NCBI GenBank assembly: GCA_977030845.1
Contig: OZ365112.1
Location: 20,336,001 to 20,400,000, forward strand
Source: Fimbriosthenelais zetlandica
Taxonomy: Eukaryota
Reading direction: 5' to 3'
Length of the DNA stretch: 64,000 nt
The first letter of the stretch is position 1; every line of letters starts with the position of its first letter. The position numbers and the translations under genes are program-made. Of this stretch, positions 32,966 through 64,000 are shown one piece after another. Under the pieces are notes generated by a model. That model saw only the letters and a program-made list of their open reading frames with translations. It ran no database searches and had not been told where the DNA came from.

Positions 32966-33425
32966 AGATAACTATTTTTCATCTTTATATCCCCATATAT
33001 TTGTAAAGTCATAGATCTGTAGACGGTTAAAAATAAGGTATTGACTACTACACAGATTAATATACAGTGAAATTGAAAGGATAGTAGATTTTCGGGGGAA
33101 ATGAATCTACCAAAATCATGTTTCTTTTGGTTCACTCAAGGCCTACAAAGTACAATCGTACAATCTATAGGCCTACTGTCAATAGTCAATACGGTAATCA
33201 GTCACAGTAGGCCTATTATTTGGGTGAATTTCTGGATATTTCTTTCAACCAACAGGATTAGGAACCTTTAGGATATAAACATTCTGAATTATTCTGTCAT
33301 AATTTTTTGGGCCAGTTATAAAACACATATTTTCCTCATTTCAGACCAGTACCACTTCCACTGAGTACCAAGTGCTGCCAGTACCAGTGCCACTACCAGA
33401 TGAGTCTTTGACTCTAGACTGAGAG

Positions 33426-36004: not shown

Positions 36005-39000
36005 TCAACTCATCCGACAATTACATGCGTGTGTAAATGAAATATTCCTGCAATGTAATTTGTCGCAATTAAAGGCCATTAGAAAGATTGTTGACTTAAA
36101 AGTTTTACAAGATAATTTAATTCTTTTAAGATGTAAAACATTATGAACTAACTTTGATTTTTTTCCTTCAAAAGCCAGACTTATAATAAGACTAATTTCT
36201 TTATACAAAGCTTTTGTTGGGAGAGTCCTTTTAAAATGCCTGACTAAATAAAGACAGCATACTTTCTCTAATTTACTGTTACTGTTGCTTTATATGTAAA
36301 TCTATTGGTCCTACACTACACATATAGGTAGATACTGACGGGGAGGGGTCAAGTGAAGCTGTAGGGGTTAAATGGGGTTAAGGGGGTCAGTTTTCGCTGC
36401 ATAAATCACCCTGTGGTGCCCCCTCCATTGTTCTGCCCCCTCGGTCCGGTATTTACGAGTTCATTATTTTGGCTTTTTGGAAAGGTTTGTGATCACTGGG
36501 ACGTGGTATTCTAATGTCCATATGATACGCCTTGCCTCAGTTTCCAGGTCCATTATTTCCGTGAATTCTTTTTATCTTTTTCCATACATGAAATGTTATT
36601 TGAAAATGTTTAATTTTTGTTTTTGCAAAGGCAAGAGATTAGGCAGTGGAATTTTATTCATACAATCTTTTTCCGCCATGAAAATGATATTCGCATGGTT
36701 AAAACATATAGGCTTGGTATGTGTTGAGGTTTTGACGTAAACTTTCTCTTTGCGGTATATTGTAGGCGATCCTTTGTATATCTAAGCACATGAAAATCTG
36801 CCGGTGTCAGATTTTAATGCTTCCCCAGCTTTCGGGGACCGTTCTACATTTTGTAAATTGCCCTGGAGTGTGACAATGTTTCTTTCAGGGAGCCGAGCTT
36901 GTCAGCGGGTCCTCTCTTTTTGTTGAGCTCTCTTTAGAAAAGAGTCTTTAGCGGGTCGGGGCTCCCTCTGAACCGAGCTCTTCCATTCTAATTCCATTAA
37001 AGTGCTGTCAGCGAACTTGATACAAGAAAAAGCGGCGCCCAGTCAGTGTCTTCAGTTTGAAAAGTAAGCTTGAAGTCTTCGCGCTTTATGGGTCCATACC
37101 ACTCGATTCATTCGACTTGCCAAGGTCCATACCCCTCACCGCATTGATTTTGCAGTCGTCATGCTGTCAGACTACACCATTTCCAATGTGTTTAGCAATG
37201 ACCCTGATAATCTGCAATCCAGTAGATTCGATCTCTGCAAATCAATGACCTTGTCCACAGTTCTAACGACGCCACAATGTAACCGACTGAGATGCAGGGC
37301 AGTCCAGGGGTTCAGTGATATCTAAAAGGACTGGTGCAAGTCTATAGTTGACACCTGAAAGGTTAGAAATGATGGTTGCTTGACTGGCGCTCGGAGGGCG
37401 CAGGTGGAGGTGGTGTAGGGGTCATGAGGTCAGACAAAGAGGGCCCATCAGAGGGCCAAGGTCATAGCCCTATAGCTGGTTTACATACACCGGCTCTGGG
37501 CATCGCCCTTTGGCCCCCCAATCCCTACCACCCACCCCCACTCACCTTATCTAAGAAAAAATAGGGCGGACTGCAATATTCTATATTTTGTAGTAACATG
37601 TCTGCTTCAGAGCACCAGACAAGATTTTGCAAAGTGTTCCGGTCCAATCTATGCCAGGTGATCAAAATATTTGGATAGGCCTATCGATGAATGGCTTGCA
37701 TCCATTAGGCCTATGTATTTCAGGTGTAAGTAGTCCTACGTTGAGGTTCTAGGCCTAATCTCGAAGGTGAACCAATCGACACATTCGACGTTTATAAGGA
37801 TCCTGCGGGTATTCCACCTATGCTATCCTCCTACATAGGCCCAATATATAGACCCTATACATAGGCCTGGCACTGATGAGTGGACCACCCCAACCCCCTT
37901 TCCCCAACCCCACCCGAAAACCCCTACCCACCTATACACAGCTTTGCAACCATAGCGTCCCGCAGAGTGTCAAACATTTCTCACACGGGGCCATGTCATT
38001 GACATTAATCATCATACACAAGCGCTGTAATGAATTGCACCGCAAATTTGTCAAAGCATCAGGGAGAAAAGAGAGCATGTCACTCTCTAGGTCGGTCTTC
38101 ATCATACCTATTTTGTACACCTTCACAGAGTGAAGAGCTTTACAGGGAGTGAATAACCAAGACCCCACATGGATCAGTGGCCTGGGGAGCCCCCTGCCTC
38201 ACACGGGGGATGCCCCTGCCGGCAATCTTAACTGTATCTCCACCAGCACTTTCCACTTTTTCTGTGGTCGCAGGCACACATCCATGGATCCTGCTATCCA
38301 CGAGTCTTTTGTGTGAGCCTTACGCCAAAATATAAAAATCTCACCTTAGAAAATTGGATCTGTCAATGTCGCATCCGGGATTACATTTCAGCCACCCAGA
38401 CCATCCTTTGTGGTTTTCCATGTCACATCAAATAAAGACAGAAATATATGTCAGAAACATCGCCAAAAGAAAAATTACTCCCACCCATTATTTGCAGCTG
38501 TAATGGTTAAAAAATATCGAAATGACATATCAGTAATATATGGATAGAGAAAGATGATGGTTAGGTCCAGGCACGCGTTCGTGGTTGGCAGCACGGGTGG
38601 GAGAATCTATATGGGAGTGTGCCAAGGTGAAAAACTAAAACCACCTGATACGTTTTTATGTACCTAATTTAAAACGTGAATTAAGATTTTTATCAATGAG
38701 AAAGTACGAAAGAGATCCAAACAATGTTGTCAGGTCAATAATCAGTTATTCTTCTCCTTCGCCGATCAATTTCTTTAAAAATTCTTTCATGAGGGTTCCC
38801 CTTTAACGAAAGCCCCAGGTCATGAAAAATTGTAGATGACTCAGGCTCACTTTGTTAACTATATGTCTGCGCTCGTAAACATCCTGTGATTCACATCCCA
38901 CAAAGCAGATTTTTTTCCCCAAAGTATCATATCTCAGTCATATGTACAATGTATTGATTTTCACTTTAGATATCTTCTTCATCTTTGTCCTCTAGTTTAA

Positions 39001-41229
39001 CAGAATGGCTGGTATTTCTAAGTGAAAAAGTTAAGTGGTTGAAGGGATGTAAGGAAATCCAATGGCATATAAACACAGCCCCCTCCACATTTCGTCAATA
39101 AAAACTTTCTTGTGACTGAAGAAATAAAATGATGACTTGTTCACTACAAAGGTAGCCAAAGGGATTCTACATTAGCCGTAGTGACTCATTTCATTCAGTT
39201 AAATTGATTATTAAAAATCTATTGGATTTAGGTCCTATCTACACTAGGGCCCAGATAGATTGCCCTTGTACATAGACCTCTATCGGCTACCATACCAACT
39301 TATATGGGCCTACCCATCTGGCATGTAATGTTATAAATCTTAAAAAAAATAATTGTAGGACGTGATTTTCTCCTAAATAATTTTGTTTTCTTGAAACTTG
39401 TCATGCTCTAGGGTAATGGCGATACCTTTACTGGAACCCTGCCCTCCATCCAATATGAATCATAGTTCCTCTGAAAAATTGCGTATTATTGCCTATTTTC
39501 ATCACTAACAACCGTGGCACAGGGGGCAGGACCTGAGTTTGAAGTTCTTTATAAATCAGCGAGGAGATTACTTGCCTTGCTTATAGAACATAAAATCTGG
39601 TAGTTTGCATGTTTGGGACATCTTTTCTAAGTACCCTCTGGCTGTACCGACTTTTCTCTTTAGTTCCTATTACAGGGCTAAGTTAGTACCTACATAGAAT
39701 GTGCCTTACATTCTTATATCCCCATATGATGATAAAGGCCCCAAGGTCAGATAATTCTGATGACCTTCACCTCTAATGCCGTTAGAGGGCATCTTTTCGT
39801 CCAGTCTGTGGTCTGCCCTTGGCCAGGTATGACCTTTTGAACCAGGGACTATTTGTTGGCAGTGGATTGTCACGTCCTTTAGTACAGAGACTGAGGTGTG
39901 CAGGGGCAAAGGGCATAAGGGAGGGCCTGGTCACATCAGATTCTGAGGAACCACACAGGATGCAGACCTGTAGCCTACGCCTAGGCCTACACTTTAAATC
40001 AAGATAGTAGGCTACTTTATGGTAATTTTGCCAATAATAGCAGTAGGCAGCCAGTCAACTGAAGGTCTCTGTAGCTCCCTCATTTGATAGATTCCTCTAG
40101 GCCTATATATGCTGATGGTTTCTTGAATGTTTCTTGTGAGTTTTCTTCACTTCCTGTCGGCATGAAGAAACTTTACTTTGTTCTCTAGGATTAACATTTC
40201 CCATCATTTGCTTGACGTGAGCGGCCTCTGAGATGTTCTTACAAAACTGACCACCTCCTAACCCCTCCTCTCTTTGATTATTACTGACCACCACTGACCA
40301 GTGACATGTATGTGTTAAGCCTAGCGCCCAAGCTGAGCACTTAAGAGGCCTCTCCTTGACCTCATGGACACTTGAACGCTTCCGGAGCAGCCCGCCAATT
40401 CATCTCGTGGTATTATCGCTCACTGACCTATTGTTCCTCACTACCGGTCATGCTGCTACAGTCTCTCATTTCCATGGCAACTCTTTAGACATACTTGTGC
40501 AAAAGAGAAACTCCTTTTTAAACTATAATATAGGCCTATTATGCTAGCCCAATATTCTGAAACAAGTCTTTAAGGCGTTATATATGCAGTTCATGCTCGA
40601 AGGATTCATTTCTATTGCGATAGTTGGAAGTTGTTCCATTATATACAGCTGCTTACTGAGTACTACTTATACACATGTACATCAACAAAATTGCTAAAGA
40701 TGCAAAATGTTATTCGTAGAAATAATTGAGCCATGATTTGCCCTCATTTATATTGACAAATCATCGAAAAAGTAGGCATAATATATGCATATTATATGTA
40801 GGCCTACAATTATATCTGAGCTTATTAGAAGTATTTTGCCTCAGAATGCATACATGTAGAAATCGATTTTCACATGAGCTGTAATCTGGAGCGCATGCCT
40901 GATAATCGAAGCATATGGGAACCAATGAGGTCCCTGGTCCCTAGTCACGTGGGTAGAGGACCGTGGTCATGCACCATTGGCTTTGGTTGGGCAGCATCAA
41001 TCACCCTTTGTTGTTCCTCCTCTCTGGTCCTCTCTTTCTTACTCCTCCCATCCATCTTTCGTGAAACAATGATCAACACGCGCCTACCGATGACACACAC
41101 GTGCTTCAAACACTGGGGGGTGGACTAACAATCTCCAAAGTCAGCAAACTTACAAGTTATCGTAAATCACGAGCATGCAAATTAGCTAGCCATTGTTTGC
41201 ATGATTTCAAGAGGTGTTGTCCTGACGGT

Positions 41230-41420
41230 GTGCCATCCAGCAGGCACCTGTGTGCTTCTTAGAAACAGTGCCTTGTCAAAATAGGGTTTAATCATTTGGA
41301 CAATCAATGCCCTCAATATTTCCAAAAGGGGAGGGAGAATCTTTATATGCAAATGATGCAGATGAGATAACAAGGACAAACATGGGACGTCCTGGCAACA
41401 AAATGGACCCGATGAGCAGG
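41230..41420 (+). mobile_element. Possible decayed RT remnant
   Basis: IWTINAL followed, after a frameshift, by SLYANDA, resembling iyiNDL...lyADD. Weak. Confidence 0.25.
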
Positions 41421-44400
41421 CAGTCCATCAACTCATACAAAAGGTCATTAATTAGTGACATCTTTTTGCCCCTTTCAATGTCATCACAACATTATGATTC
41501 ACCCTTCCCAATATTATCCATGTCTCACCCATGTAAATAACATGCAAATGTCCATTTGTTATCCCATGTTGGCCAAGGGTTATCTCTGCATTCCTTTTGT
41601 CTTCTCAAAAGAAGCTACTGGGCGTGATGGCAATGTTAATTGCCTTCTTCCTTTCACTAATTTGTATAATGAAAATGGCAAAAGCCTTAAGGATGATACT
41701 GAAGTCTCATGCCATAAATTATTTCCGCCAGGCGAAGAATTCAGCAAAAAACATATTTATCCAGGGCAATGGCTCGGAAGGTAATTGAGTGGCCGTGCCT
41801 GGCAGGCCTAATGTTCTGGGTGATCAAGTTTTTGACGTTGCCGTTTAAGGATAATGGACGTTAATAGGGAAGGTAGCCATTAGCAAATAAAAAGAAGTTC
41901 AAGTGTCTTTCAAAGTGTCTTGATGTGTGGTACTAAGTTTTGATCTTTGCAAAAAAAGGTTCACTAGTCTGTCATAATTATACATTTCCGGCTAAGGTCT
42001 GCCCAAAAGTTTGTTTTGAAAAATTTGGAGTCGTCCTTTCAATAGATATAATTTTAGCAAACAAAGTGATGGAAATGCAATTAAAGTGGCAATTCTATTA
42101 GCATAAACATGCTTTCACTATAGCTATACGAAATCACAAAGTAGGAATACAGCCAACTAGGTCTCTGTTTCTGAAAGGCAATCTGAGTTGATGCAGAACT
42201 GCAGTAATGTCAGACTTGGTGTCTGGATGAATCACTAATGAAGTGAAAATCAGATAACATGTATCTCCCTAAGGCATTTGGAGCAAATTATACTACTTTA
42301 TACATTGTAACGTATCATAAACTATAGGTCCAATTCTACATAAAAAGCCATGAACAAGAACCACATTCTTTTACCTTTTGTCATTGAACATGCTCAATGG
42401 CCCATTGAATCGTTTTGATACATGAACTGGGTGCATGTTGACAACCATAAATTGAACTGTCATGCTTTTATGACGAAAAACAGAACAAAATTCACTGACA
42501 ATGGAAACGTATGCAGACTGCCACATGGAAATATTACCATCCTTTTGTCAGGGGCGTACGAACCCTTGGCAACTGACTGGGGTGATTTGCGGGATGTAAT
42601 TATAAAGTATCATTACTATTGAAAGAATTTGAATGAAGGAAGATAATCGCTCTATAGAACATGCATACATAGTAAAAATTATGAATTGTATGAATGAAGA
42701 GAATAATCATTTAACAATTAGCAAGATCCATGAAAATTTATGTTCCATAAACAAATTGTCAGATGCACTCATTAATAGCTATCTCTAAAAGGTGTGTATG
42801 CGAATAAAAGCTGCATTGCCGCACACATGTTCCATGTTTTGGAATACAGTAATTTTCACTATACAGTGCACTCGGGTGTATTCAGATTGGCCTGCATTTA
42901 AAGATGCACGAGACAATATTTTATTTGATTAAGGGAGGGGTTTTCATGAGATGAATTTTTTTTACAAATGAGTTCATCTTGGCAGGCGTGAAAAAAAGAG
43001 AGGGGATTCAGTAGAGATGGCTAATATACCCGAGGCTGAAAATTGCTATCAGGCAGTGTCATCATAGACTAATATACCCCACCCACACCTGGCCATTGGG
43101 GCGAGGTAAGCGTGCCACAATTGACACATAGGGCACTTTTTCTTCACCCCAGAACCCCCTTCAACCTTCTTCACCCCCTTTACCCCCAACTATAATTCCA
43201 GTATACCCCCAAACCCCAAGCAATTGCTACTGTTTATAGACTGCTACCTGGGTTCTGATTAGGTTAAATTTACATGCTAATAATTATTGCAACAATTATG
43301 CTGCTTTTTCCCAGAAACAATTCAGAATGCATTGTAAAAATATTTGATAATATAAAACATTGTGGGTTTCATATGGATGTAAAACACAGGCATGTCCTGC
43401 GCGAAAATTAAATTCTGCCGAATTGGCTATGGGCCAGTGCGTCCATTGTTGGTCTGGGCAGATGTAAACCCCGAGTCTCGCATGCCAGCACACGTCCAAT
43501 ACAAATGACAAACAGTGATTGGGAATTAAGCTTCTTTTTGTTAGTTGAGATAATAGCTGTAGGGATATATTCCTTAACTCTAGTTGTTGATTGGGGGAGT
43601 GTAAGGTACAGCACGTGCCAATTTCTAACAAGCCAATGTCAATGAATGGAGTAATATTTCCCAACTTATTAAAGGGCTATCAATTATGGAGGTCTCCTAG
43701 TCATGAATAGATGCATATTCCACTGCCATAAAATGTATTTATTGTGATGTTTTTAATTAACCAAATGACTTTCTCAATGGGATATATGACATAAATTGCC
43801 ATGTGTCTGGATAAGAATTTTTGATAGAAAAAAAAGAAAGATGAACGTGAATGTTTTAATTTGCATTATTCAAATTAACGAAGTCTTTATATTAGGCTAT
43901 ACCTCAGTCTTTCATCGAATAAGTGGGGGTTAAGGCGGTTATGAAGCCATTAAAACTGAACTATTTTCTCGGGATAAGGAACTTGGAGTGCCCAGTAATC
44001 CACCTCAGCCACCTGTTAGGCCTCACCTTGTGCCATTACTGAGCACTGTGTCCAGATTCCCGGGAGGGGTGCTTGTCAAAAACACTAAGAAAATAGCCGT
44101 GACATCTCCAAGGATAGTCTTCACTATTTAAAAAGAAGCTTAACACTGGCAAGATAACCGTATAAAGGGGAGATTATTCATGTGACTAACGCATCTCTAT
44201 AGATATTTCCCGTTGTTAAGTCCAGGGTTAATAGCTTTTTATGCAACGCTTTCTTTGCTATTATGTAACACTGCCATATGCAAGACATTGTGTTTTGGAA
44301 AGTCATTAGCTCAGAAAAATTGAGAAATGGTGCACCCCGCTTACCCTTAACGGTAGTTGTTATTCGTTTAAGATAGTGGTTTATGCAAGGAAGATGACAC

Positions 44401-44969
44401 GTTGCATAATTGGAGTTTTTTGTATGGGTTGCTATGGTCTTGATTATGGGGTACATGGCAGGAGGGCCATGATGCGCATTTGGTTGAATAGTTAGCCGTT
44501 GCTAAAAGGAGGGAAATGGTATATCAGTGGCTGGCAATCAAAATATAAATAATTCCCTATATAATTATAATTATACACGTATTTATTAACCAATGATATA
44601 TTTAAAATTTCATTTGACCTTTAATATCTTGTTCTTTGCCTGATTCTAGAAACAATACTTTTGACTGTTGTTTCTAATGTTACCTGGAATAAATTATTCC
44701 AGGCATCGGAAAGAAACTATTCCAGGCATGCTGCCCGCATCTTTTATTGACATCGAAATTTCACGAAGTAATCTGCGTCAACCCTCCCTTTTTTACACCA
44801 TACATTTTGTGCTAACAATAAAAGTGGTTATTTGTATAAGAGCAAAAGCCCGTTATTTGTACCTCCCTAGTATTTAGCCCGACCTGCCTGCCTCAGACCC
44901 GAGTGTTATGGTCACACTTTCCATCAAGGATAAAGCACCTAAAGTGGTCATCAAGACTGGAACGAGTCA

Positions 44970-45190
44970 GCTGTCACGGGTCCATTCTAGGATGTAACTG
45001 AGGCAATAGGGGAAGCACAAAAGAACTTACCATTAAAAGGGACATTCCTGGCTTCTGTTTAAAAGCCAGATATATAGTTCCTGGCTCAGGGGTATAGGGC
45101 CAGCCTGGGACACTGGAACCAAGCTCGAGGCTATAGTGGTCAGCGTTAAACGATACCCTACAAGATGACCATTCCATCATCCAATGGGAG
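44970..45190 (-). mobile_element. Decayed CR1-like RT remnant
   Basis: RVSFNADHYSLELGSSVPGWPYTPEPGTIYL aligns by eye to RVvvnG..S....v.SGVPQGSVLGP.LF.iY. Confidence 0.4.
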
Positions 45191-48100
45191 CAGCTTTAAT
45201 TAGGCCCTCTCTGTTCAAGAGAAACAATTGAATGCAAGGGCGGAAACAGCGGGCGATTTGCTCACTCATCCGAGTTGCCCGGACCCGGCTTAGTCCGCCC
45301 CTAAAGTCAGATTTTAATGGCCGGAAGCCAGAGGGGAAATTACACGCTGGTGGCTAGGGTGGGAGTATATTTTAGTGTGAGGGCTTATGATGGTCGAGGG
45401 GAAAAAATAACCCGACAGGCTGTCCACGAGCGGCTAATGAGTACCTGCATGGCCAAGGGGTTGAGGGTTGAGGGGTGGGGGAGAGAGGGAGGTCTCCCTC
45501 GAGGGTGGGGTCCCAGATTGGACGCAGCCTATCCTCATCATTAATTAGCCATGAAGCTGGTGTTGTGTCCGGCCATTTGTGTCACAACAAAGACCAGGGA
45601 GCGAGTGGACATGCATGCACATATAGTTTAGTAACATTTCCTGGGAGTCCCCAAAATTAGCATCCTTTTTTTTGGGTGGGTAGGGTGGGGGGGATGGATT
45701 AAACTCTAATAAGAACCTTGATGTTTGTAACTTAATCTATTAATATAATTATAATATTTTTGTTTCAACATTTTTATATGAAGTTCACTAAAGGAAGCTA
45801 TTCCCCCTAAGTTCATGAACTTGGAAGCAAACCTCTAAGTATAATATGCCAAATTCATCACCATTATGTTATCAAGTACAGGGCTCATTATTTCTAACAG
45901 TACAAGAGAGTGAGTGACCCCACATTCTGCTACATGTTGTACATACATATGACACACCTGTACATGCCCTGCCTGTCTTCCATAAACGTTACCATGGTCC
46001 ATGACTGGGATGATTTACCTCCAGCTATGTATATCACCATGTTCTGACAACAGTTGTTTGATTACCTAGCCTGTCTATAATGGCATTATGGTAGACCACT
46101 GTACCTGACCTCTAGCCCTCCCCTCACTTCTCACATGTTAGGGTCGTCTTAACAAGACCACACACCTCTATATTTAAAGCTTAACTTAGAAAATGTGGTT
46201 TTCTTCTTAAAATGACACAGGACAATGAAGAAATGTCTCTAATTCTACTTGTAAGTAGTATATAGATCAGGGTACATTTACCAGGACTAACTCTACATCG
46301 TCTAATATATTTTGACTCATGAACTCATAACGGTTTCCTTATCATTGGTTCCCTGCATGAGAACAGATATGAGAAGAAAGGTCATTATCCTCAGTTATTC
46401 CCCTGTCCATGATAATTATATTTCAATATATGTTTGAATATAATACATATAGGCGTTGATTTGGTTCATTTGTCTCCTCTCTCCTGCCGGTGAACAATGG
46501 ATAATGATGATTATATTTGCAGTCTGTAGAAGGAGAATTGCTAATTTTCTGTTGCTATTCATGCCTAGAAATTGTAATCAATGGAAATATAGCTGAACCG
46601 GGTTTGAGACAGACGTATAGATTATTGCTTGCTGTTTCGTGACCTCTCATTATATTGTCCGGCACAAGCCATTAGAGCAGAACGCTCATATCAACTGATC
46701 GTTATTACTAGGCATTTGCCAGGAAATTTGTAACCAGTTTTCTCACGAGCTTGATTCTCTCTGATAGAGGCCTTTGATAGGCCGTGATATCGTGGGAAAT
46801 TAGCAGTTGATTATAGACCCGTTGGTGGGGCCAGGTGCCCGTTGGAAGGGGCCTGCACGAGGCTAATTCATTCAACAATATTATGAATGAATGCCCGGGG
46901 CATGAATGTGTGCGAATGCCTCGATGTTTATTTTACAGTTCCTATAGATTGTTTCCATGGGAACACGCCCCTATTTTCAGTTAAGCGAATAAACTTTCAT
47001 TGTAATTCGCGTGCACTCTTGTCCATTGTGAAAAAACAAGCAGTTCTTCAACTGTAGACTCGTCCTCGAAGTTGGGGGTCCCTAAGTCCCTAAGTCCCTA
47101 ACAGTCATGGCTATCATAGCAAGAGTGAAACAGTCTTCATGGTAGCCAGCAATGCAATCTTTATTGCCATATCACCAAACACTATATTTGTCTTGACGTC
47201 ATAGTGACGCTCACAATTACCCGTTCTGACCTATCTTAGAGAATCTCGAGCGCTTTAAGTTTTGAAAAGTGTCATGACGTACATGTAGACCTATATAAAA
47301 CTTCTAAGGCATCATATCTTAGGCAATCTGGAGTAGACTTCTTCTAAGCGGGGTTTTTGATGTCGCAAAATGGCGCGTGGCTGACGAATGTCGCACGACA
47401 ACCGTTAAGTGGCTCAGTTCCTGTGCAGGGAGCGTGTGAAATGCCACGCGCTTTGAAAAAATGCTGGAAAAGCTTGTCTTTCATTGCATATCCTGACCAG
47501 GCACACCAGTTTTGATCTCGGCACGCTTGGCAGACTGTAAAAAGATTGAATGACATGGAAAATACTGCACATCCGACACGAGTGACTGCATTATTCGCCA
47601 AAAATCAATTACCCATGATTTGATATGTCAAAGGTCCATGTAAGTTAAGAGAAGTCTGTGCGTGATTACAATATGAAAGCTGATGGAGATTTCCTTTTCA
47701 AATTTCTCTATTATAGACCTGGCAGTATATTATTGGTGGGTTATAATCACTTGCCAACATGTGCCAACATGAAATTTTACATGAGGGCAAATTCATGACA
47801 TTTTTAACATTGGTCATTGAGTTGTACGGGTCAATGAAGTACCAGTTGGTTAGAACCCTGTAATTAATCATATGAGCGCATTTATTGAAAGCTCAGTGTT
47901 TGTGGCATATTATTTGCGTTTCCTTTGATATTATAACTGTTGGGGATATAGAAAATTAAGTTATTGCTGGTATTTGAAGTGAAGTTCATCTGAATATTCA
48001 ACAGAAATCGGGAAAGAACTGACCAAGTCTTTCTCTTAGCACATTTGATCTGTCTCTATATTAAGCATCTGCTTTAACGCCCCGGAGACATACAATTATA

Positions 48101-51100: not shown

Positions 51101-52399
51101 GAGAAAGGGGATCTAAAGCTTTTACTAACGCCTACATTAATGACCTTTGACTGGGGTCTGATCCAGTGATGGAGGGACACCAAGTAGGGTGGAATGAATG
51201 CATACCTGGGGTTCAAGACCCCTGATCATATTCCCCTCCTACCGTCTCAATCCCCTAGTCGCCATTAAGCATTTGTAGGGGGGATCTTTACTGGTATTTG
51301 AAGGGTCTCGTGTCTGCCACCATGCTGACGTTCATAGAGCATTTGACTTAAGCTGGCGACAGATATATTTAAAGGGATGGAACTAAAAGCCTTATATTGG
51401 GCTGGACAATGCTTCCCTATACTATCTTGTTAAGTACAAGTACTGAGAACAAGGAACCTAAAAAGTATTTGTTTAAGCTCATTTTGCATCCATTTATAAT
51501 AGAATCATTGTTTAAATCACACATTTCGTTGTCAGTTCACCAATCCAATATCTTTGAGGCATTAACTAGAAGAAAAGATTTATTTTTAACATCAATTTAA
51601 TTTATAAGAATTCATGGAAGGGAGATAATTATCTTATTCATGCTCATGTCATGATTATCATATTTGTTTTTCCTATAAAGAATATGTTCCTGAAATGTAG
51701 GCGTAAATTGAACTCAACCTTTTCAAAGCTCTTTCAGATAAACACATTAAACTTTTTTTTTGTAAAAAAAGAAAAAGAAAAAAAGAAGGTAAGGTTTGGC
51801 TGAGTGTAAAGTACATTCACACCACTGGTATTTGCGGCCAGGTATATTAACACGCCACTATGACAACTTTCCCATCTGTGCTCCTGTATCTCTATTTCGT
51901 GCATGTCAAACCGGACAACTGATCGATCGACTGTGATATTAGAGATGCACAGGTCCCTTATTATGGGGGAGGATCCAAAGGGACTCCCTTATGTAGTTGA
52001 ATGGGGAAAGGAAAGGCAGTATATTACAGTAGAGGTTTGGTTAAAAACTCCTGTGGTAGGCACGTGCTCTCTTAGACCACCCCGTCTGCCTTTGCTATAA
52101 AAAGTGTTTACGTGTACATATGGGAAATACTATATAGTAAACCTAGGCTACCTTATGTATATATATTTATCCCCCGGCTAGGCCCTCCTCGAACTGGAAT
52201 TAACAAAGCCCCTCTGAAAAGCTAGCCTACTCCAATTTGTTATATACTTGCATTAGATGTCAGATGTTACATTAATTAAGTTAAAATAAATTTTATAGTA
52301 GCACCATTCTGTTAGAAAAGGCATATATTTTTAACAGATCTGAAAGTAAATATTACTTTTGGGCGGTTTCATTGATCCTATATCCTTGAAGTTGCCCGG

Positions 52400-53100
52400 C
52401 ATACCCAAAGTTTTTGTCTGTCTATTGCTGTTCCCTCTGTCTTTAGAATGACCTTCTAACCCCTCCTCCACCATCTCACGCAGGTTTTCCCTTTCCCCCG
52501 ACTTTAACATCAAAGCCAATGTCCAGCATACCTTTGCCAATAACACTCGTCCTCAAGGACGTCTCAAGCACCAATATCAATCAACGAGTCCCCAAATATT
52601 TCCAATTGGTCGGAGCCCTCTTTGAGAAGTGTTCAGAACTTTTAATTTATACACCTGACACAAAAAGTTGGAGGGGACAGCTTGGATATCATTTTTACCT
52701 GTGAGTGAATGGGATGGCGTGGCGTGGCCTGGGTTAGTTCTATATAGGCGGCGCCCATGTACTTGAGTAGCAATATATGATTCCTCTTCAAAAGCCTCCT
52801 CAAGTATACACGCCAATCACTGAATAAGTTAACTGTGAATCACTTTCGGTATGCACTTCTCTTTCTGTCTCCATACACATTGAATTTAACACAGAGACTG
52901 GACACCGCGTCCATCAACTTTTCTTAATGCAATCGACTCGAGATTCCCATCTGAGATGGGGGACATCTTTGATCTCCACCGCCAATTTGTCACAAGGTGT
53001 AAATGGAGACTTTGATCACTGTGTCTAAAGTGTGGCATAATTGCTCGCCCGACCATTGTTGTCCGGACTGGCCTTGGTCATAGAAAGTCCCTGGCCAACC
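52400..53100 (-). mobile_element. Decayed LINE RT remnant
   Basis: GDQRCPPS (about 52977-52955, cf. GV.QGCPLSP) upstream of WKYLGT (about 52604-52587, cf. KYLG). Confidence 0.35.
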
Positions 53101-56100
53101 GCTTTCATCAGTGTAGATAGATATATATTGGTTCCCTGATAAGAATCTTTACTATGGTGGTGGGCTATATAGTGGACAGGTAAGATGGTTTCTGTGTAGG
53201 ACAATATTATGTCAGGTGCCCAGCCACACAGAGGTGACAGGTAGAGATAGTCATCAGCCCTGATCATTCACTTCAATCAGATGGCTATCTCTACCAGGGA
53301 CCGATTGCCTTTCGCCTCGATATCTTTCTTCCCATGCAAGCCGGTAGTAAGTGAAAGAAATGTGATTGTACATAATCTGGCCGGCGTTGTCTGTGATACT
53401 GTTTCACAAAGGGCACCCATGGACTTTTAATTAGTTTTATTGCCATCATACTGAGGTCCTGTGGTCATCCTGTTAAATATACAACAGGTAGTATCAACTT
53501 TAACATGAATTATGTAATGATACTAATATACTACAGCATCAAAAGAAATATACTCAGGTTCTTCATAATGAAGCTTACATATATCTGCATATGATACCCG
53601 CATCCAGATGTTGAGAAGATTGAGGTTGAGATAACACAAAGAGGATCATTTCTCTTAATTTTTCTCACACTGTGATCAACATTACTGCTTCCATTATTAT
53701 CCCGCTTGACCCTTAACACACCACAAAGGCATCAATCACTTTATTTTTCTTTTACTTCTACTGCAGGCATATGTTGATTTCTTCATTTATTTATAGACTT
53801 CCCTGCTGCATCCAAGGCAATTTTAGTGACGTGCATACCGTTCATAAGTAATTTTCGCGATTATGTGAAGTCATTGTCATGTCCTTTTACAGTATTTTAT
53901 ATTTTTTAATGAAAATCAATTCTCAAATTTATCTTTGAACAAGTGATACTTCGTTTATACCATAGCTGTATTCTAAGCGTCCCAAAACTCAACGTCGTTA
54001 ACTGCTTCGGTGCAACATTCTTATGATTTAAAAAAATATAATAAAAATACCAAAGAAACATTAGCTATTCTCTAATCCTATTACCTCAGATAATTGCGTA
54101 GCGGCATCCGTCACTGTCCTATAATCAGAATAAACAAAGAAGAATCGGCACATAGTGGAGAGCTGAAAGAGCTTCTTAAGCCATCTCTGTCTGTTTACCC
54201 ACTTATCACCTGAAACTTTTCTATTGTCCTTCGCCTGTTTTGGGTTTGTGGATGTGAGTTGGCTCGCCTTAACAATTGTTTTTGACCTGGCTGGCGACAG
54301 GTTAATGGATACAGCTTTTCCTGAAAGTATCATAAAACAAAGAGAATAGAGGGATTAGTTAGTTATCTCTCTGTATTTCAGTTAAGAGTGAAGGTGTTGG
54401 CTTAATTGTGAGCATGGATCAAAGCACGGCGTTTGACATTAAAGGTCCGCAGTCACTTGGCTTGAGTGTATACCTTCACGACGTGTTGACTTCTCGGCGA
54501 CTGCTCCTATTGTCTTGTAATTGCAATTTCCAATTTAAGGTCTGAGAGTTTGAGAGGTCTGAGGTCTGACTGGTAAAGTAATACCGATGGATAGTGGAAA
54601 ATGGCTACTCATATATAAATCTTCAGGTGGTAGGACGATGTACGTGACATATGGACTATATTGTTAGTTCTTTAACAGGCGAATTGCCTTTCATTGTTTC
54701 TTGCTTTTGTCTATGTATATTGGGGAAAACATTGTTTTCTCAAATAGCCAATCCAATTATCATTCTGTCATAGTGTGTGGGATATACATGGAGAAGAATT
54801 TAAAATGGATACTGTTTAAAATAGAAGATTAGAAATAGAAAGGCTGATATAGTCAGCGTTGGAAAGGGGAGGCTTTGTTAGCTAGGTCTTTGGCTCTCAT
54901 CAAAGGGACATCAGCAGTATCATTCTCCTGTTAAGGGGGCGTATGGAATTACACTTTTGCCCCGGTCAGAATAAAAACTCCCATTGGTCACGCCGCAGAG
55001 GGTCCATCTAGGATTAATTTGAGACCACAGGGTGCCGAGGGAATTAAAAAAACAAAAAACCCGGTGAATGAACTTTATATTTCACCGCTATGCACACAAA
55101 TTCCTAGAGGCCTCCAAGTAATTTGTGATCCTTTAGAAGGGATAATATATGAATCAGTGTGGAGCAATAATACAGCAGTTAGAGAATGATGTAAGAAGGG
55201 GTGTGCATGGGGTGGTGACAGATCACCCCCACAGAGACAGAGAGGGCTCTTGAGACTTGGTGATTGCTGAGGCATGAAAACATCACACTGCATGGTATAT
55301 TGATCACATGATTATAAGCAGGTGTAGGTGGTAATATAGAACGCGATCACAATATCTTTTGTATATTATATTTGAAATAAATGGACCTATACACAACTAA
55401 AGTGTACAGCCCCTTGATATAAATTTATCTACATGTAACATGTAATGTAAATACTTTTTCTCAATTATTTATTTATAACAGTATAATTATATTTTGAGTA
55501 TAGTTATTAATGAACACTTACAACGACAACATTACAATCTACGCTCATATCAACTCATTAAGTTGTCATTAGCTCTAAATATTAAATTCTTCGGATTCGG
55601 GGATGTCTCTCTTTAAGATATTTGCAACAGAATTATTATCAATCGAAACCCCTCAGTATGTAAGTCAATGATTTCATAACCGCTTCCTAACAGGTACTTA
55701 TTCACTTAATATCGTCTATTGATGGTTGAAATGAACTACACTGATGAGGATAATTATTAATTGACATGTGCCAAGGCCGGGGTGGTCCACGCGAACAACA
55801 TGCCTTCTGATATATGGAATTAACCACGTGTAGTCCACACGCCCCAGGTCTACTATAACTCATAACACCTTTTGTCGAGACCAATCCTCTTAAACATGGC
55901 TAAACAATAAGAAAAACAACAGGGTGGTTGGGTTATTTATAATCTTTAATTTTTAATCCTAAGAGGTGTGAAATCTCTCCGGGTAACTCAACAAGCATTG
56001 CTTTTAAGCTGCAAAATATTTTCACTGTAACACAATATCCCTCATTACATTAATGCTACTTAATGGTGATTATCGTTGAGAATTTACAATTTTAATTGCT

Positions 56101-58199
56101 ATTCTGGATTTGTGCCAACTATGACTTACGATTGCTTATTCTTTATGCCATCTGTCAGTATTATTTTACATACTGCACGCAAAGTGACATTTTGAAGTTT
56201 AAGAACCCGAAACCCCATACTTGTGATCATTTCAAATGACGAAAATGACTACATTTTCAACATAATTATGCATGGCATAGGCCATGACAGTGAATGGTAT
56301 AGTCGAGGGTGCGAAAAGGATTGAACCAAACTTCCTTTCTACAAGCCATGTTCTTTACCCTCCACAAAAAACAGGTGTGGGAGACCGCTTGTTTAAGACG
56401 CATCTTAAATAAATTCTTATTCGATAGACATGAATGGACATTGTTTGGAATGATGGAGGAGGAGGTGGTAGCTGGTGGTCACTCAGTAGGCTTGACCAGT
56501 GGACAGGTGCATGCATATAGCACGAGCTTCTTGAGGCCAAATATAATAAAGTGGTTCCAATACCATGCTAATAATAGGGATATTATATACAATTATGTTC
56601 ACTTTGATATTTGGCAATGGTGTAAATCCTCCCATAAATTATGAATTGGTGATATATAATTGTGTGTCCAATGTCACTAGGATCCTTTCAACTCATCAAG
56701 ATGTGTTTAATGTCTAAGAATTGGTAGTTATAGAAACATTCATCCTATTAGCCTAACCCTCCCATTTTACCCCACCCACGTCCCCCACTTATAACCCTAC
56801 ACTTGCATTCACTAACTTCCATTCTCAGTGTATTGTTATCTGATGCCTTGGATATAGGGACTGGTCAAGTTTGAGAAGGTTCAAGAGTGTCTCACGTTCC
56901 TGACAAATAGCCTTTCTTCCTCAAGAATAAATGCACTTGATGTTATTTTCTTTAGAGATTTTACAAATTTTGCCAAAGGAAAAATGGAAACTTGTTGGAA
57001 CCATAGTCCATAGTTAATTTAGCCCCATCCATTCAGGAATACCACAAATATTTGAGGCTAAGATCCGACACCCAAATCCCTGCTCATCTACCCCAGTGAA
57101 TCCACACGTGCATGCAATTTATCAAGTGGTCAAATCCATGCAGTTGATTTTACAACTTTGGTAGGTCCAAGTCGGAGTTCATTTCATAAACTTCCACGCC
57201 TCAAGGACCCCCACACCGCATCCCCGTCATAGAAGAATAGTCTTCTTTTGTACCTGTCCGAATCACAACACAAAAAGCCCTACGCGAATAAATCACCAGT
57301 TTCTAGGGCTCTGAGATGGGGGCCAAAGTAACCCAAGCTTTGATGGCGACGCCCGGGCCTGGGGTCCATTGTCCAGCCTGTCTGCAAGCAGAAAAATGTT
57401 TGTCTATTGCTATGACAATAGCCAGGGATGTACTGGACAAGGATGGTGGCACCAGGAGTGACCACCACTCACTGCTCCCCCCATGGCATCCCCAGGTGAT
57501 GTGTATGAAAGTGATTATCACTAGCCAACACTTTCATGGGCCTTAATCATAACCTCTGATTTTTGGTCACGGATAGTGATATCGCAGTCAAACTTGAGCG
57601 ATATCAGACATCTCTTGAAATTGGAAGGTATTTATCCAATTCTCAAAGAGAATCAAACACAAAAGACGTAGTGAAATTTAATTGGGGTTGTGCCTGGAAA
57701 TAATTTTTTATTTACCTCAGGCGTTTATATGATTTAAATAATTAAATTGATTCATTTACATATACAATACTGGATTGGCGGCCTCCACTGTTTTAATTCA
57801 CAAAAAGATACCCGTGCTGTTCTTGAAGGTATTGCCTCTATAGTATTCACACTTACACTGTATTGCTCTCAGCAGGGAAGGATTAAATCCATCTCTGCAG
57901 GCTACTCTTTATTCTTCTGGATTCCGTAAGCCACAGGTTTTACATCAATGGATTTTATGTATTTGCATTTGTCATTTTCAATTTCACTTCTGCCTTTCAT
58001 CCTTTTGAGGCCTCAGTGTTTTCAACACCTATGATAAACTCGGCAGCTGTCCTTCTCCGAGGTCATATCTCTAGGATTCAAATCACTGACTTTGAGGGTG
58101 TTAGGCGAAAGGCTTTTTAGGCTCTCATCAATGTTTTCTCGGACACCCGAGGCGCTTATGTCGGTGTGGTAGAGGGGTAAAGGGGGGCTGAGTGTGAAC

Positions 58200-58800
58200 A
58201 AAAGCATCCCCATCTTTGCTCTTCTAAAATGGCATACAAAAATCAAGGCCGACAAGGGGGGCTGGCACCCGCAAAGCCCGAACATTAATCCTGGCCACGA
58301 TTCTTTGATGCTCCTGGTGGATATCTAAAATTATAATGAGTTTGCTGCTTTCTCTGTACCCTTTAAATAAGCAGAGAGAAGTATGGGTAGCGGCAAAGAA
58401 CATTTGGCTGAAGGGCAAAAATGTTGGGTGTGGGCAGCGGCTCGTGGAAGAGCTGTCTATACTCTCTACCAAACTGATTCGATGCAGGACATCAAATAAA
58501 ATGTATACTTGCATTGGTGAGTTAACATTAAAACATAAGGTGGCGTAGAATATAATGTTGAGGCTGGTTTTCCTCAAATCAGCAGGTTGAACGTGAAGTG
58601 GAAATAATTAGGCTGAAATAATGAGGAGAAGGACTGGGTGGTCATGCTAGATATGGGTGTACTGTAAAAGGAAGGCCATTCAGGGACAGTTTAGGCTCGT
58701 CAGATCCGGGACAGTCCCACAATACATTGGCTTCCCTGAAGAATAAAAGGGCTATACAAATTCCGGGGAAAGGACCAAGCTATCAAGGTATGGCTTCTGG
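58200..58800 (-). mobile_element. Decayed LINE RT remnant
   Basis: Motifs in the expected order: CPGSDEP (about 58713-58694, cf. aPG.DgI), NQFG (about 58479-58468, cf. nQfGFR) and IILDIHQEHQRIV (about 58330-58290, cf. vFLDl.KAFD.V). Confidence 0.5.
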
Positions 58801-61800
58801 ATGATGATTGAACCAAACTTTAAGGGATAACTGGCACAGGCCACCGTGTCCAGACCTAGATATTATATATTTTGCATACCAGTATTCATAATATTTTTTT
58901 CTCTATTTTTTTTTTTATACATTTAATATAATATAATAGATAGATTTGATTAAAATACTTGGGATGTTGCAAGGAAAAAGAAAATTGAAAATCACAGATG
59001 GTGCTTTGACAGAAAATATGGGTCAAAAGTAAAACAAAGGTGAAACTACATGTAGTTGTGTCACCCAACCTCCTCATATCATGCAGAGGCTCCCATTGTA
59101 GGCATCATCCATTCTTCCTATGTCAAACTAATTTGCATATCATTAGACAGGTATTCTATAGAGCACAGGTATTATTAATTGGATTTAGCTTTAACGGGAG
59201 CCTGACAAATTGTTTAACAAACATGCCTAGTTCCCTCGGGCCATCGTGATTATGAAATACGCTGAGACAAGGGACAAGGGGAGTTGATGGGAGGAAATTG
59301 TTGATGTCTACTCAGTGCATCTGTTCCATATTTTACAATGAACAGATTTTTCATGAAATTTGATTGCTGTTGTTAGCAATAGCCCAAAGACATTGGGTTG
59401 TGGTCACAGTAGATGTTATACTGGATCGGTTTAATTAGTCTGTTCCTACCCATAATTTACTCTCATTTGATATCATGAACTCTTCTCTCACGAAGTAAAA
59501 TGTCATTACACAGGGAAAAGCTTTCAAATGTACTAATGGTGTTCAGTATATATAGGCCTATTACATACAATTCGCATGTGTTCAGATTTCACCATGAAAG
59601 AATGTAGGATATAGGGAAAATAGACTGCATGAAATAAGATTACAAGTACTGACGGTGTTTTGTTCACTCATGTAGAAGAAAACTCAGGGTGCTCTCTCCT
59701 TGATCTTTGGGCCCTTTACCCTCAGGCTGCCTCGATTACAATGAGTGATAGTTATGTAAACCCCGACTAGTCGCGACAGACAGGTAAGAAAAGGAAAACC
59801 TGCCTTTAAATATGATTTCATGCCTTACAATGAACATTCTGTCCTCGGGTCGAGTTTTTTCTTAGAGGACGGCACGTGCCTGAGCTATAATAAAAAGTGA
59901 TAAGCTCTAGTAGTGGATTTTTTCTCAAGTGGACAATATTCTGATTGTCCCCAAAGGGGGTGAACTATGTCAAATATTCTTGCACCTGTCGGGCATCGTG
60001 GTGGCATCTAACAACGTGTCTTTTTTGACATATTGCTATGAACATAAGAACAGGTAGGCTACATCGTCCACTATCGCCTATAGATTGGCTGTCTATGGTC
60101 TGCACTCAATGGAAGTGATAGATTGGATTTTTTGTATGGCTTTGTGGTCCGGGTGTATTTCATTGCTTTTCAGTTGGGGATTAATGGAAGAAAAGTTGGA
60201 GGGGTTGGTCTTAAGGGGACCAAGACATTAGTATTGGGTAGAGAGGGTTTATTCTCGAGGGTATATTTGGGACTGACACTACTGACACCCGAGCTTGTAG
60301 CGCGCGTGTTTGTCATACATTATACTTCGCATATCAACCAGTCTTCTCGCCTTTTCTTACTCATTGTATGCCAGCCGAACCCAGTCATCTTATTTGTGCA
60401 TGCGTGAACGACATCACAATAATAGGTGAGTGACACGCGTCGTCAGGGGAAAGATTAGTGCCACCGCGCATGCCTTTGGATGGTGGAGAGTTCAACTTCC
60501 GCTCGTGACGTCACGGGGGCACGTGTCATTGATGGCGGCTGTGGCTAAGTCGCAGGGTTGAATGTAAACAGACGAGCCAGCACATTAAAGGCTTTGCTAT
60601 CCACACCTTTCAGCTTGGCAATCGCTTTTCTTAAGCATGAAGTACATTATTAGCTGGATTAGGCCAGTCACAAAACAGTTGAAGCTGTGATGGGGGAAGG
60701 GTCAAGCTATATTTTGACTTAATCTCTAATCCAAGGAAGGGGAGAAAGGCTTCTTGGTGGAGGCCCCAGGGAGGCCAATGAAGTGCCTATTAGCTTTCAA
60801 GGTCCCAGCTTTAAGATTTCTGAGATGGTGGAAAGATTGAAGACCTTCTTGATGAATCTCAGAGCAGTGAAAAGGTTGACACTAAGAAGGTAGAAATCCG
60901 GAAGCTACTCTTTGTTGTACTTGTATTTACATTCCTGAATCTGCCTCAGATTAGCACGTTTTCCAACAATCAATTCCCCACGATGAACCAATTAAACTTC
61001 AGGAAGTTTTATGATATGATACGCATAATTATAGGTCCACTTTAATGTATGATCCAGGACTATAATTTTTTTAGGTCATCGTATCTCGATCTGGGGTATA
61101 GGGCCTATATATAGGGCCTACAGCTTCACTCTGTTGGATTCACAGGTGAAAGTTTAAGATTCACATTGTGTATCAGACTCTGAGGAGGATGACTTCAGCA
61201 TTCCATTGATGTATAGTTGTCAGCAGAAAAAAATCACCTCAACTAACCAAGTGAATCTTGTGCATTGAAATAACGGTTTCAGAGGCAGAAAACGTTCTGA
61301 CTGAAACTCATTGTTGTGATCCAAATGAAAGTCCTTAGTGTGTCAAAATGTGCATAAACTTTTTTTCCTTTTCTATATTTAACGTAATTAGGAACTTGGT
61401 TCTCCCCGAAAATATCGAAAACGTGCAATTGGCTATACCTAGCCAAGTTTTTTCTGAAACAACCTAAAATCTTTGTGCAGATGTGACAGTCATACACACA
61501 TTAAAAAGTATGGCTCCGAAATCAACAGTAAAAACTGGCTAAATTTCTATGCAAGTGACAGCCCGAAAAGCCCCCATGCTGAAGAAGAAATCATATTCCT
61601 CACGCATGTTAAGTGACACGCGCCGGGTGTATAGTGTATATGGAGTCTGTGGTTATAGGAGTTTGGGGGCGCCACAGTTTGTAGGGTAGTCATTAGCCTG
61701 TTGTTCTATACATGGTGTAGTCATGTTGCCTATATACCCCCATACCACCAGGTGATACCTATAGGCCAGGGGAAAGGCGCTTAGGTAACTCGGCCCCTTA

Positions 61801-64000
61801 TGAGGTGGAATATTGTCAGGGCCAGAAATATAATATTATAAAGGATTTTATTTTTGGAGGACGTATCTATGTCAATTAGGATAGAGTATCATTGGCCATA
61901 CAGACCGAGTAATATGAGGACACGTTGTGGTTTGTGCACCAGGCCTTTTTATGCACATTGAGGTGTAGTTCATTTCCTTCGAGTTCTCTTCATAACACAA
62001 TGAAAAGTTTTATTCTCCATTTCTTGGCCTGAGGGGTTTGACAGAATGGTACCAATACTGAATCTGCACGAGCCCCCACCGCATCACATCCTCTGCCTGC
62101 CCTGACCCAAAACATGCAAGGCTTGGTCCAGATTGTATGGCACATCCTGACGACCTGCGACAGGACTGGTTTCCTTCCATTTTTGCACTGGGCATGTCTC
62201 TGAGGAAATTGGGTAATTTATGTCCATTATTTTCATCGTTAGAGGACGGCCTATTGTTGAAGTATGCATTCATGACCCCTTATGATATGATAGAGGAGAC
62301 AGAGGTGCAAGACCTGCAGTAAATTTTATGGCCTTCAGATTATAAGGGCATGTACATGTATGATGTCTGTGGCCTGGAGACAAAGTAGTTCATGTTTTCA
62401 TATTCATATGCTGTTCTGAATTCAGAAGGAATGCCATTGTCCAAAGATTATTGCTGAGTTCTGGATGGACTTGCATCTATAGAAGAATACAACTATAAAG
62501 CTAGATATGTTCCTACCTTGGCTATGTGATAACCTGCATGAGAATCAGCATATCGCTCCAGGTAAAACATGGGTTCAATCTTGAACCTGAGTTAAACGTG
62601 ACCCTGGGGTGCAACAGGACTAAAAACCAATTACATTAAAGAACTACCTAGCAGGAGCAACCTGCAGGTCAAATAATGAAAGAAAACTTTGGTCACCACA
62701 ATTTCAGGCCATCATAATACATAGCGCGGCCACTTCCACCCGGAGACCGCATGTATAGCTCACATCTTGATAATTCATCCTCCATTTTCTACATGGCGGC
62801 CCGCCGACAAAAAAACCCTGCTCTGCTTTTGGTCGTTTCCTGTAAAGACCGACTTAACTTCCGCTTGGCTGCGCGCGTCGTTTTGGTCTTAATGACGGGC
62901 AATGATTGGCGGGGACTGAAAAGTATATAAGGGCTCCTGGCTTTCCTGGGTGCCCTCGTGAATAGAAAGGAGAACAAAATGGCCCTCGTGTGCTGGGTGA
63001 TGGGAGGGGTAGCCTTTGGTATGCCTTTCAAAGTTTTACTCCATTGGGCGATATTTACCGTATTCCCAACAATAATGAGTTCTCGGACCCGTATACTTGG
63101 CCGTACTTCCATTTCTATTCTTGGTGTCTTGCAGGCCTTGCCTTTAATATTGCAAGAAAATATTTGTTATATATGGTTGTATAAAGTGATTATAACTATA
63201 TAGCGATTGCAGTTTGTCCTTGTGTTGATCACGAGGCGTTTAAACATGATAATACGGTAAAGTCGATGAAAGTGGGTTCAAAGACAATCGTGAAGCTTTA
63301 TGCATGGAGCCCCATTATACCAGGGACACTGAGAATAGTTCACTATACAGGCAGCATCGTTTCACTCTCCCTCTTTTCCATCATCTATGAAAACTTCATT
63401 TCTCAAGTCCTTTCTATTCATCCCCTGACCTGGCCTCGGCGAGATCAAAAAGAGTCTCAATGACGTAGAATAGTGGAAAACTAATGACGTCATAACTGGA
63501 CTGAATGACTTTCCTTTCAAAAGAGAATTGTGGTGTTCTATATGTAATAAATCAAAATCGACCCATGTAGTTTGGCATTTTTGACAAGCAAGGGTCACAG
63601 AATACAGAGAATTTCTGAGACTGCATGGGTATGAGACATGTATATCTTGTTGATATTTCCCAAACATTATACTTTGGATTAAACTATAGGCTGTAAACTA
63701 CTGAGACAATAATATAGAATGAAGCTTTATGCACCTAAATAAGATTTCCTTTTAAACTAAATAGGTGCTTATTATGACCATTTCCGTCTTTTCATTGATT
63801 TCTCAATTACAGAAGACATACATATAGTGTAAATAACAACCTCGCCGCTGAAATGCCTTTCACGCTTGCGCTCTGTTGGGTGATTATTTCAATGATGTTC
63901 ATAATTGTTCATAATTCAAATAAATCACCTAGTTTATGGGCATGTCTGCACTCTAATTAACTTCAATAGAAATCTGCTGAAAAAAGTTCACAGTTCATGT

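Follow-up and report, generated by a model that had tools for sequence, protein, structure and literature searches.

Among vertebrate Neurogenin genes, mouse Neurog2 has 3′ enhancers. Vertebrate neurog1 is driven by discrete regulatory elements, such as the zebrafish LSE bound by B1 SOX (PMC2865518). In the main texts of Irimia et al. (2012, PMC3514665) and Touceda-Suarez et al. (2020, PMC7530604), genomic regulatory blocks (GRBs) are described as regions in which developmental transcription-factor genes are surrounded by arrays of conserved non-coding elements and bystander genes stay syntenic; these main texts, gene-pair lists apart, do not mention Neurogenin, CatSper3, H2AFY, or Pitx. At the vertebrate PITX1 locus, the gene order on human 5q31 is PCBD2, CATSPER3, PITX1, H2AFY (macroH2A1), DCNP1, TIFAB, and NEUROG1 (PMC2222245), and mouse Pitx1 has a Polycomb-associated contact with Neurog1 (PMC12241559). 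Here we analyzed a 64-kb window (G000:C13:20,336,001-20,400,000) on the 41.2-Mb contig C13 of a 447-Mb assembly, the right-hand part of which is gene-free DNA between CatSper3 and Neurogenin and a candidate 3′ regulatory landscape of the latter. The window contains no N. It was analyzed together with 200 kb of right flank (264 kb in all) under continued numbering, in which 64,001 is C13:20,400,001.

The stretch adds one more example to a well-known class of features. As in a GRB, a developmental transcription-factor gene is the only recognizable gene in about 64 kb, the coding sequence of this putative target is less conserved than discrete non-coding blocks nearby, the unrelated neighbor CatSper3 is linked to that target in another species, and the wider gene set is common to human 5q31. 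The locus is unlike a described GRB in that conservation of its elements was seen against one related species only and over one sixth of the stretch. As at vertebrate Neurogenin genes, the single-exon Neurogenin gene has discrete conserved elements on its flanks, the 3′ side among them, here with a putative regulatory function. The vertebrate PITX1 locus (human 5q31, mouse chromosome 13) shares with this one the closeness of CatSper3, macroH2A, and Neurogenin, and FNIP is nearby here. Unlike that locus, the present block has no Pitx, Neurogenin lies directly beside CatSper3 with macroH2A 125 kb further on, and the whole spans about 200 kb, compared to about 0.5 Mb.

Conserved non-coding elements 3′ of Neurogenin

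The first long open frame past the right edge of the window is a single-exon gene (Table 1), whose product carries a helix-loop-helix (HLH) domain (E = 1.7e-17). It has 1,405 homologs, and among the best 120 listed, every match bearing a gene name is a neurogenin. These named matches include neurogenin-1, -2, and -3 from across bilaterians, the best being from Platynereis. The best relative of solved structure is NeuroD1, at 71 bits, compared to 88 bits for the genome's NeuroD, which is a separate gene on contig C1. Genome-wide, the gene is the sole Neurogenin-grade match, and the next best basic HLH (bHLH) gene is NeuroD on C1. Judged by these relatives, it is the genome's single ortholog of the nerve-cell regulator Neurogenin, convergent with CatSper3. 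Apart from Neurogenin, no domain-bearing open reading frame (ORF) was found between 35.3 and 99.1 kb, the largest ORFs from Neurogenin to the K+ channel gene on its right being without a domain, and 29 kb are empty on its 5′ side. The gene-poor interval is thus adjoined by a developmental transcription-factor gene, as in a GRB. No other gene was called within 10 kb on either side of Neurogenin in amphioxus and chiton, or within 7 kb in Lingula. CatSper3 has been kept in synteny with Neurogenin over a long evolutionary distance, as is typical of GRB bystanders, and in a third species, which is more distant, both genes are on a single contig of 933,396 bp.

The 264 kb were compared with a contig of a related species (L032, Logan run ERR14368248) that includes 10 kb 3′ of Neurogenin. 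The sequence of this contig ends at a position matching about 59.5 kb, and within the window the alignment covers 59.6-64.0 kb. Its Neurogenin is 63% identical to the one studied here. The gene calls stored for L032 read through stops: P0001 is listed with 367 amino acids, and the Neurogenin frame ends after 334. Simple translation therefore does not reproduce products called on such Logan contigs. Eleven blocks were found in the same order and orientation, all in 59.6-71.3 kb and none elsewhere in the 264 kb. Two of them are Neurogenin coding sequence, with 68-71% identity, mostly in-frame gaps, and mismatches of 76/58/151 and 9/9/27 by codon phase; the excess at third positions is expected for coding blocks and was seen in both. 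Eight collinear non-coding blocks lie 3′ of Neurogenin, with identities of 62-89%, or 73-89% if a marginal block at the end is excluded. In these blocks, mismatches are spread evenly over the three phases, gaps do not come in threes, and stops interrupt the six frames in both species. By nucleotide identity, the non-coding blocks are as conserved as the Neurogenin coding sequence or more so. Only 25% of the DNA between 59.6 and 68.85 kb aligns, which indicates that the background has diverged beyond recognition.

The collinear elements occupy 59.6-63.0 and 65.2-67.2 kb (Table 1). The element at 62,682-63,030 has phase mismatches of 24/18/29 and a CpG observed/expected ratio of 0.90, against a regional mean of 0.55. 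For that at 60,250-60,685, the corresponding values are 29/27/29 and 0.84-1.1, and it contains identical runs of 38 and 28 bases. Across the 264 kb as a whole, CpG is depleted (observed/expected about 0.55), which suggests a methylated genome. Ratios of 0.8-1.1 at the conserved non-coding elements and at the Neurogenin promoter region stand out from this level. A poly(A)-signal-like hexamer follows the Neurogenin stop at 1,165 nt here and at 1,163 nt in L032; given this position, the first block is probably the end of the Neurogenin 3′ untranslated region (UTR), and the other blocks probably lie beyond the transcript.

On this alignment, the block pattern is the signature of conserved non-coding elements beside a developmental regulator, and the elements near Neurogenin are probably Neurogenin enhancers. 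We assign them to Neurogenin because it is only 6-9 kb away, compared to 25-28 kb for CatSper3 and the K+ channel gene, because the blocks are collinear with Neurogenin in the related species, and because of what is known of such genes. The 3′ cis-regulatory landscape of Neurogenin is in our view the best reading of the stretch, and we hold it with moderate confidence. Under such a model, enhancers or silencers in the interval would be bound by neural patterning factors and would loop to the Neurogenin promoter, the DNA at 36-59 kb would belong to the same landscape as the elements at 59.6-67.2 kb, and CatSper3 would be a neighbor perhaps held in place by it. The initial annotation had also proposed a regulatory block with CatSper3 as bystander. 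A regulatory role is indeed probable and CatSper3 is a possible bystander, but the evidence points to Neurogenin as the target and not to the Pitx gene that had been predicted.

Several observations weigh against this reading. The link to Neurogenin as target consists of proximity and collinearity only. Extension of the landscape over the 23 kb from 36 to 59 kb is conjectural, since within the window the comparison reached 59.6-64.0 kb. The elements may be transcribed, for example as a long UTR or a long non-coding RNA (lncRNA). The conserved blocks are common to one related species only, and in five more distant Neurogenin loci (L034-L038) the DNA in common is bHLH coding sequence alone. Finally, the scarcity of repeats described below is a trait of the region and is not special to 36,250-64,000. 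A distant CatSper3 locus (L033) likewise has only coding DNA in common with this one. The cores of two elements, their most conserved parts, gave no match in exact-pattern scans of metagenome contigs, and conserved transcription-factor motifs in the elements were about as numerous as chance would give.

Content of the gene-free interval

The last open frame of CatSper3 ends at about 35,260, and the gene-free interval therefore starts near 35.3 kb and not at 36,250, the border given by the initial annotation. Between 36,250 and 64,000 there are 35 stop-to-stop ORFs of at least 80 amino acids, the longest with 127, while second-order Markov simulations of the same sequence gave 28.8 ± 5.4 ORFs of this size, the longest reaching 147 ± 20 amino acids. 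The ORF content of this stretch equals chance. No Pfam family was found beyond chance in the 35 ORFs, the single match (E = 0.008) being at the level expected by chance for that many tests, and neither Rfam families nor tRNAs were found in 36,250-64,000. For the longest ORF (58,227-58,607, minus strand), a search of 1.84 billion representative proteins gave no relative. The statement that no exon is recognizable over 28 kb was therefore borne out.

These results bear on the idea that the interval hides an unannotated transcript, either an lncRNA or a gene of very short exons, with the conserved blocks as its exons. Enhancer-associated and neighboring non-coding transcripts are known at vertebrate Neurog1 loci. 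However, the conserved blocks carry no coding signature, and the lack of Pfam domains, of Rfam families, and of any relative of the longest ORF, together with ORF lengths at chance, makes such a transcript improbable.

The interval had also been described as holding only long interspersed nuclear element (LINE) debris, a description that the searches did not confirm. Four tiles (36,250-44,250, 44,251-52,250, 52,251-60,250, and 60,001-64,000) match only themselves in the 447-Mb genome, although the same search recovered its positive control, 45 kb to the right (1,067 first-look candidates; 181 matches, the most divergent of them 70% identical). No reverse-transcriptase remnant was detected in the 264 kb by tblastn with three reverse-transcriptase proteins from another locus, no Pfam reverse-transcriptase or endonuclease domain occurs among the ORFs of the stretch, and no local repeats were found within the gene-free interval; LINE fragments so old as to fall below about 70% identity would be missed by these tests. 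The stretch is single-copy non-coding DNA and not transposon debris. Exclusion of repeats was considered as a sign of constraint and rejected, as two unselected control tiles nearby are equally single-copy. On the right flank, the sequence at L016:5773-8846 (C13:20,445,773-20,448,846) belongs to a locally reiterated repeat family that gave more than 1,000 first-look candidates across the genome. Its dense arrays are on C13 (18.37-18.38, 18.90, 19.17, and 20.16 Mb), while C1, C10, C11, C19, C21, and C25 carry shorter pieces.

The GC-richer islands noticed by the initial annotation do exist (Table 1), but their enrichment is weak: windows in the top 5% for GC make up 9.2% inside the stretch against 4.5% outside it in the surrounding 236 kb, a difference of about twofold. 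The CpG depletion of the stretch (0.53) and its base composition equal the regional average. These values would suit a mostly neutral spacer, in which function is limited to a few Neurogenin-proximal elements (59.6-67 kb), and the DNA at 36-59 kb, most of the stretch, is unconstrained sequence between convergent genes. Equally in line with such a spacer, neighboring non-desert DNA is just as free of repeats, 75% of the comparable interval does not align, and the evidence of constraint is confined to 59.6 kb onward, where the comparison sequence reached. On the other side, wherever the comparison could be made the blocks recur every 2-3 kb to the end of L032, and nothing suggests that the array ends at 59.6 kb. 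Arrays of this sort typically flank developmental transcription-factor genes on both sides, and GC-richer windows occur about twice as often in the stretch as outside it. We regard the neutral spacer as possible, although rather unlikely, and the Neurogenin landscape as the better account of the interval.

Neighboring genes

CatSper3 had been named as the left neighbor, and this identification held. Two of its exons (33.4-34.8 kb) have Ion_trans Pfam matches, the matching PDB chains are CatSper1 and CatSper3 of 7EEB, and exon 1 has no named homologs other than "cation channel sperm-associated protein 3." Further left, the assignments to MTTP and TRMT10A stood at the domain level only: a lipid-transfer-protein exon at 12,754-12,936 on the minus strand fits MTTP, and a TRM10-type methyltransferase exon at 17,585-17,749 on the plus strand fits TRMT10A. 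The left-hand gene region also contains, at 9,869-10,100, a tandem repeat with a 53-bp unit (4.4 copies, 93% matches). Right of Neurogenin, H2A exons and, after them on the same strand, a Macro domain identify a macroH2A gene. CatSper3, Neurogenin, and macroH2A fall within 165 kb, and FNIP is 35 kb further, for about 200 kb in all.

Table 1. Positions of the features discussed, in window numbering continued into the right flank unless a contig is named; identities are to the related-species contig L032
Feature	Position	Strand	Remarks
CatSper3-type single-repeat cation channel gene	33423-35263	+	Left border of gene-free interval
CatSper3 exon ORFs	33,423-33,941; 34,277-34,525; 34,575-34,817	+	Layout read from ORFs; putative 3′ end, last open frame to ~35,260
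Gene-free single-copy interval	35264-64000 in window, continuing to 68,852	.	~33.6 kb total; between 3′ ends of CatSper3 (+) and Neurogenin (-)
GC-richer island	37001-38250	.	GC 0.48-0.50; 500-bp windows in top 5% for GC
GC-richer island	45001-45750	.	GC 0.50-0.52; 500-bp windows in top 5% for GC
GC-richer island	50501-51250	.	GC 0.51-0.53; 500-bp windows in top 5% for GC
GC-richer island	57001-57500	.	GC 0.49; 500-bp windows in top 5% for GC
GC-richer island	60.25-60.75 kb	.	500-bp windows in top 5% for GC
Weak, marginal block	59627-59990	.	62-66% over 368-378 bp, E 3e-6; collinear; at end of L032 sequence
Conserved non-coding element	60250-60685	.	9.2-9.6 kb 3′ of Neurogenin coding sequence; 80% over 436-438 bp, E 1e-100
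Conserved non-coding element	62682-63030	.	5.8-6.2 kb 3′ of Neurogenin coding sequence; 76-78% over ~355 bp, E 4e-61
Block	65,201-65,369 (L012:1201-1369)	.	89% identity; identical run of 48 bases
Block	65,752-65,842	.	83-84% identity
Block	66,159-66,314	.	76-80% identity
Block	66,726-67,170	.	73-81% identity
Block	67,680-67,964	.	72-74% identity
Neurogenin, single exon	68,853-69,914 (L012:4853-5914)	-	First long open frame, 4.85 kb past window edge; 354 amino acids
Inward-rectifier K+ channel	99.1-100.5 kb (L015:5097-6548)	+	
Annexin	~114.8 kb (L017:783-1136)	-	
357-amino-acid ORF	130.2-131.2 kb (L018:6150-7220)	-	No Pfam domain; between annexin and BTB-Kelch gene
BTB-BACK-Kelch gene	174.3-176.6 kb (L023:304-2553)	+	
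macroH2A	H2A exons 196.7-198.0 kb (L025:2679-3981); Macro domain 194.67-194.85 kb (C13:20,530,671-20,530,850)	-	
FNIP	231.5-233.2 kb (L028:7508-9235)	+	
SH3 exon	244.6 kb	+	
Three complete Pitx-type genes in tandem (L005, L007, L002)	C1:7,233,915-7,299,562	two +, one -	Within 66 kb; K50 paired-type homeodomain exon and OAR last exon each

Pitx genes and the counterpart of human 5q31

The initial annotation had read the gene-free DNA as a Pitx regulatory landscape and had placed a Pitx gene, with a K50 homeobox and an OAR motif, beyond the right edge. Its observation that no Pitx coding sequence is visible in the window was correct. No homeodomain was found either in the window or in the 200 kb to its right by tblastn with this genome's own Pitx homeodomain exon (best E = 0.39) and C-terminal (last) exon (0.028, noise). 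A genome-wide search with the Pitx homeodomain exon, in which all 78 candidates were scored, recovered three genes on C1 at 74-100% identity and none on C13, the next best matches being other paired-class genes at no more than 56% identity. A genome-wide scan for the OAR motif gave 13 matches, none of them on C13. Three on C1 (7.235, 7.248, and 7.295 Mb) close last exons that start with a K50-type recognition helix, and each of these genes has a homeodomain exon (positions 1-46) nearby, so that the homeodomain is split at 46/47. The three homeodomain exons are 74-88% identical to one another. Against PDB, the L005 homeodomain matches PITX2/3 at 2e-23 and the next family at 1.6e-14, and every homolog of the L005 last exon with a gene name is called "pituitary homeobox" or "paired-like homeodomain 2." With their K50 homeodomain and OAR motif, the three genes are, by sequence, members of the Pitx family. 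The best named relatives of the Pitx and Neurogenin proteins of this genome come from nemertean, chiton, bivalve, and annelid, and the animal is therefore probably a spiralian. In a related species, two Pitx last exons (P0132 and P0178) lie on one 172,571-bp contig.

On C13, the homeobox matches closest to the window lie to its right, at distances of 0.65 and 1.03 Mb. About 6 Mb left of the window, at C13:13.59-14.49 Mb, a span of 0.9 Mb holds ten full-length homeodomain matches, each on the plus strand, which probably represent the Hox cluster. No duplicated clusters of the Hox kind were found elsewhere in the genome, which marks the animal as a non-vertebrate. A NeuroD ortholog lies on the minus strand at C1:7,405,567-7,406,883 (L040:634-1950), about 107 kb from the Pitx cluster, its 88-bit match being to the mouse NeuroD1 bHLH. 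In human, NEUROD genes are near Hox clusters and NEUROG genes are near PITX genes. Here, NeuroD is linked to Pitx, and Neurogenin is on the contig with the probable Hox cluster, which is the reverse of the human pairing.

Pitx is therefore absent from the region. The next gene is an unrelated one, the bHLH gene Neurogenin, and Pitx maps to another chromosome, at 7.23-7.30 Mb of C1. Several facts had made a Pitx landscape attractive. The neighborhood matches human 5q31, in which CATSPER3 and H2AFY/NEUROG1 flank PITX1 (PMC2222245); mouse Pitx1 contacts Neurog1 in three dimensions (PMC12241559); and Pitx shares chromosome-scale records with Neurogenin in chiton and spider and with CatSper3 in crinoid. 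Nonetheless, with no homeobox in the window and 200 kb beyond it, and with all three Pitx-type genes on C1, an enhancer in this interval could not act on them in cis, as they are on a different chromosome. The Pitx landscape is refuted for this assembly, and we give it practically no chance.

What survives of the synteny argument is the neighborhood itself. Several of the K+ channel, annexin, BTB-BACK-Kelch, macroH2A, and FNIP genes on the right flank have human counterparts on 5q31-q33, 4q, or 10q, and FNIP1 is on human 5q31 as well; with CatSper3 and Neurogenin, these right-flank genes form a conserved neighborhood. By a rough estimate that was not drawn from real gene lists, two of about nine CatSper3 neighbors would find their human counterpart within 0.5 Mb of CATSPER3 by chance with a probability on the order of 1e-4. 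On this estimate, the window is the counterpart of the human PITX1 neighborhood, without Pitx.

Judged by identical record lengths, Pitx and Neurogenin are on one chromosome-scale record in chiton and in spider, and Pitx and CatSper3 are on one in crinoid, although neither Pitx nor Neurogenin lies within 10 kb of the crinoid CatSper3 locus. These shared records make chromosome-scale linkage of Pitx to Neurogenin or CatSper3 likely elsewhere, and the separation of Pitx from the block seen here may be lineage-specific. A tentative scenario, which we consider unlikely in its entirety, would join these observations. The block of CatSper3, Neurogenin, and macroH2A, with FNIP, would date from the protostome-deuterostome ancestor and would have been held together by the Neurogenin landscape; Pitx, once inside the block as it still is on human 5q31, would have left it for another chromosome in this spiralian lineage and been tandem-triplicated there, while the old landscape stayed with Neurogenin.

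The locus is a compact case, in an invertebrate, of a developmental gene flanked by conserved elements, and the two in-window elements of 350-440 bp are small enough for a direct test as Neurogenin enhancers. It also corrects a plausible synteny-based prediction, in that being the counterpart of the PITX1 neighborhood did not imply the presence of Pitx. The occurrence of this neighborhood in a spiralian and on human 5q31 makes it suited to two questions: whether unrelated genes are held together by regulatory landscapes for more than 500 million years, and whether the block gained or lost Pitx. If the scenario of an ancestral block were true, the vertebrate PITX1 landscape, with its H2AFY bystander and its NEUROG1 contact, would be a shared ancient two-regulator domain and not a vertebrate construction.

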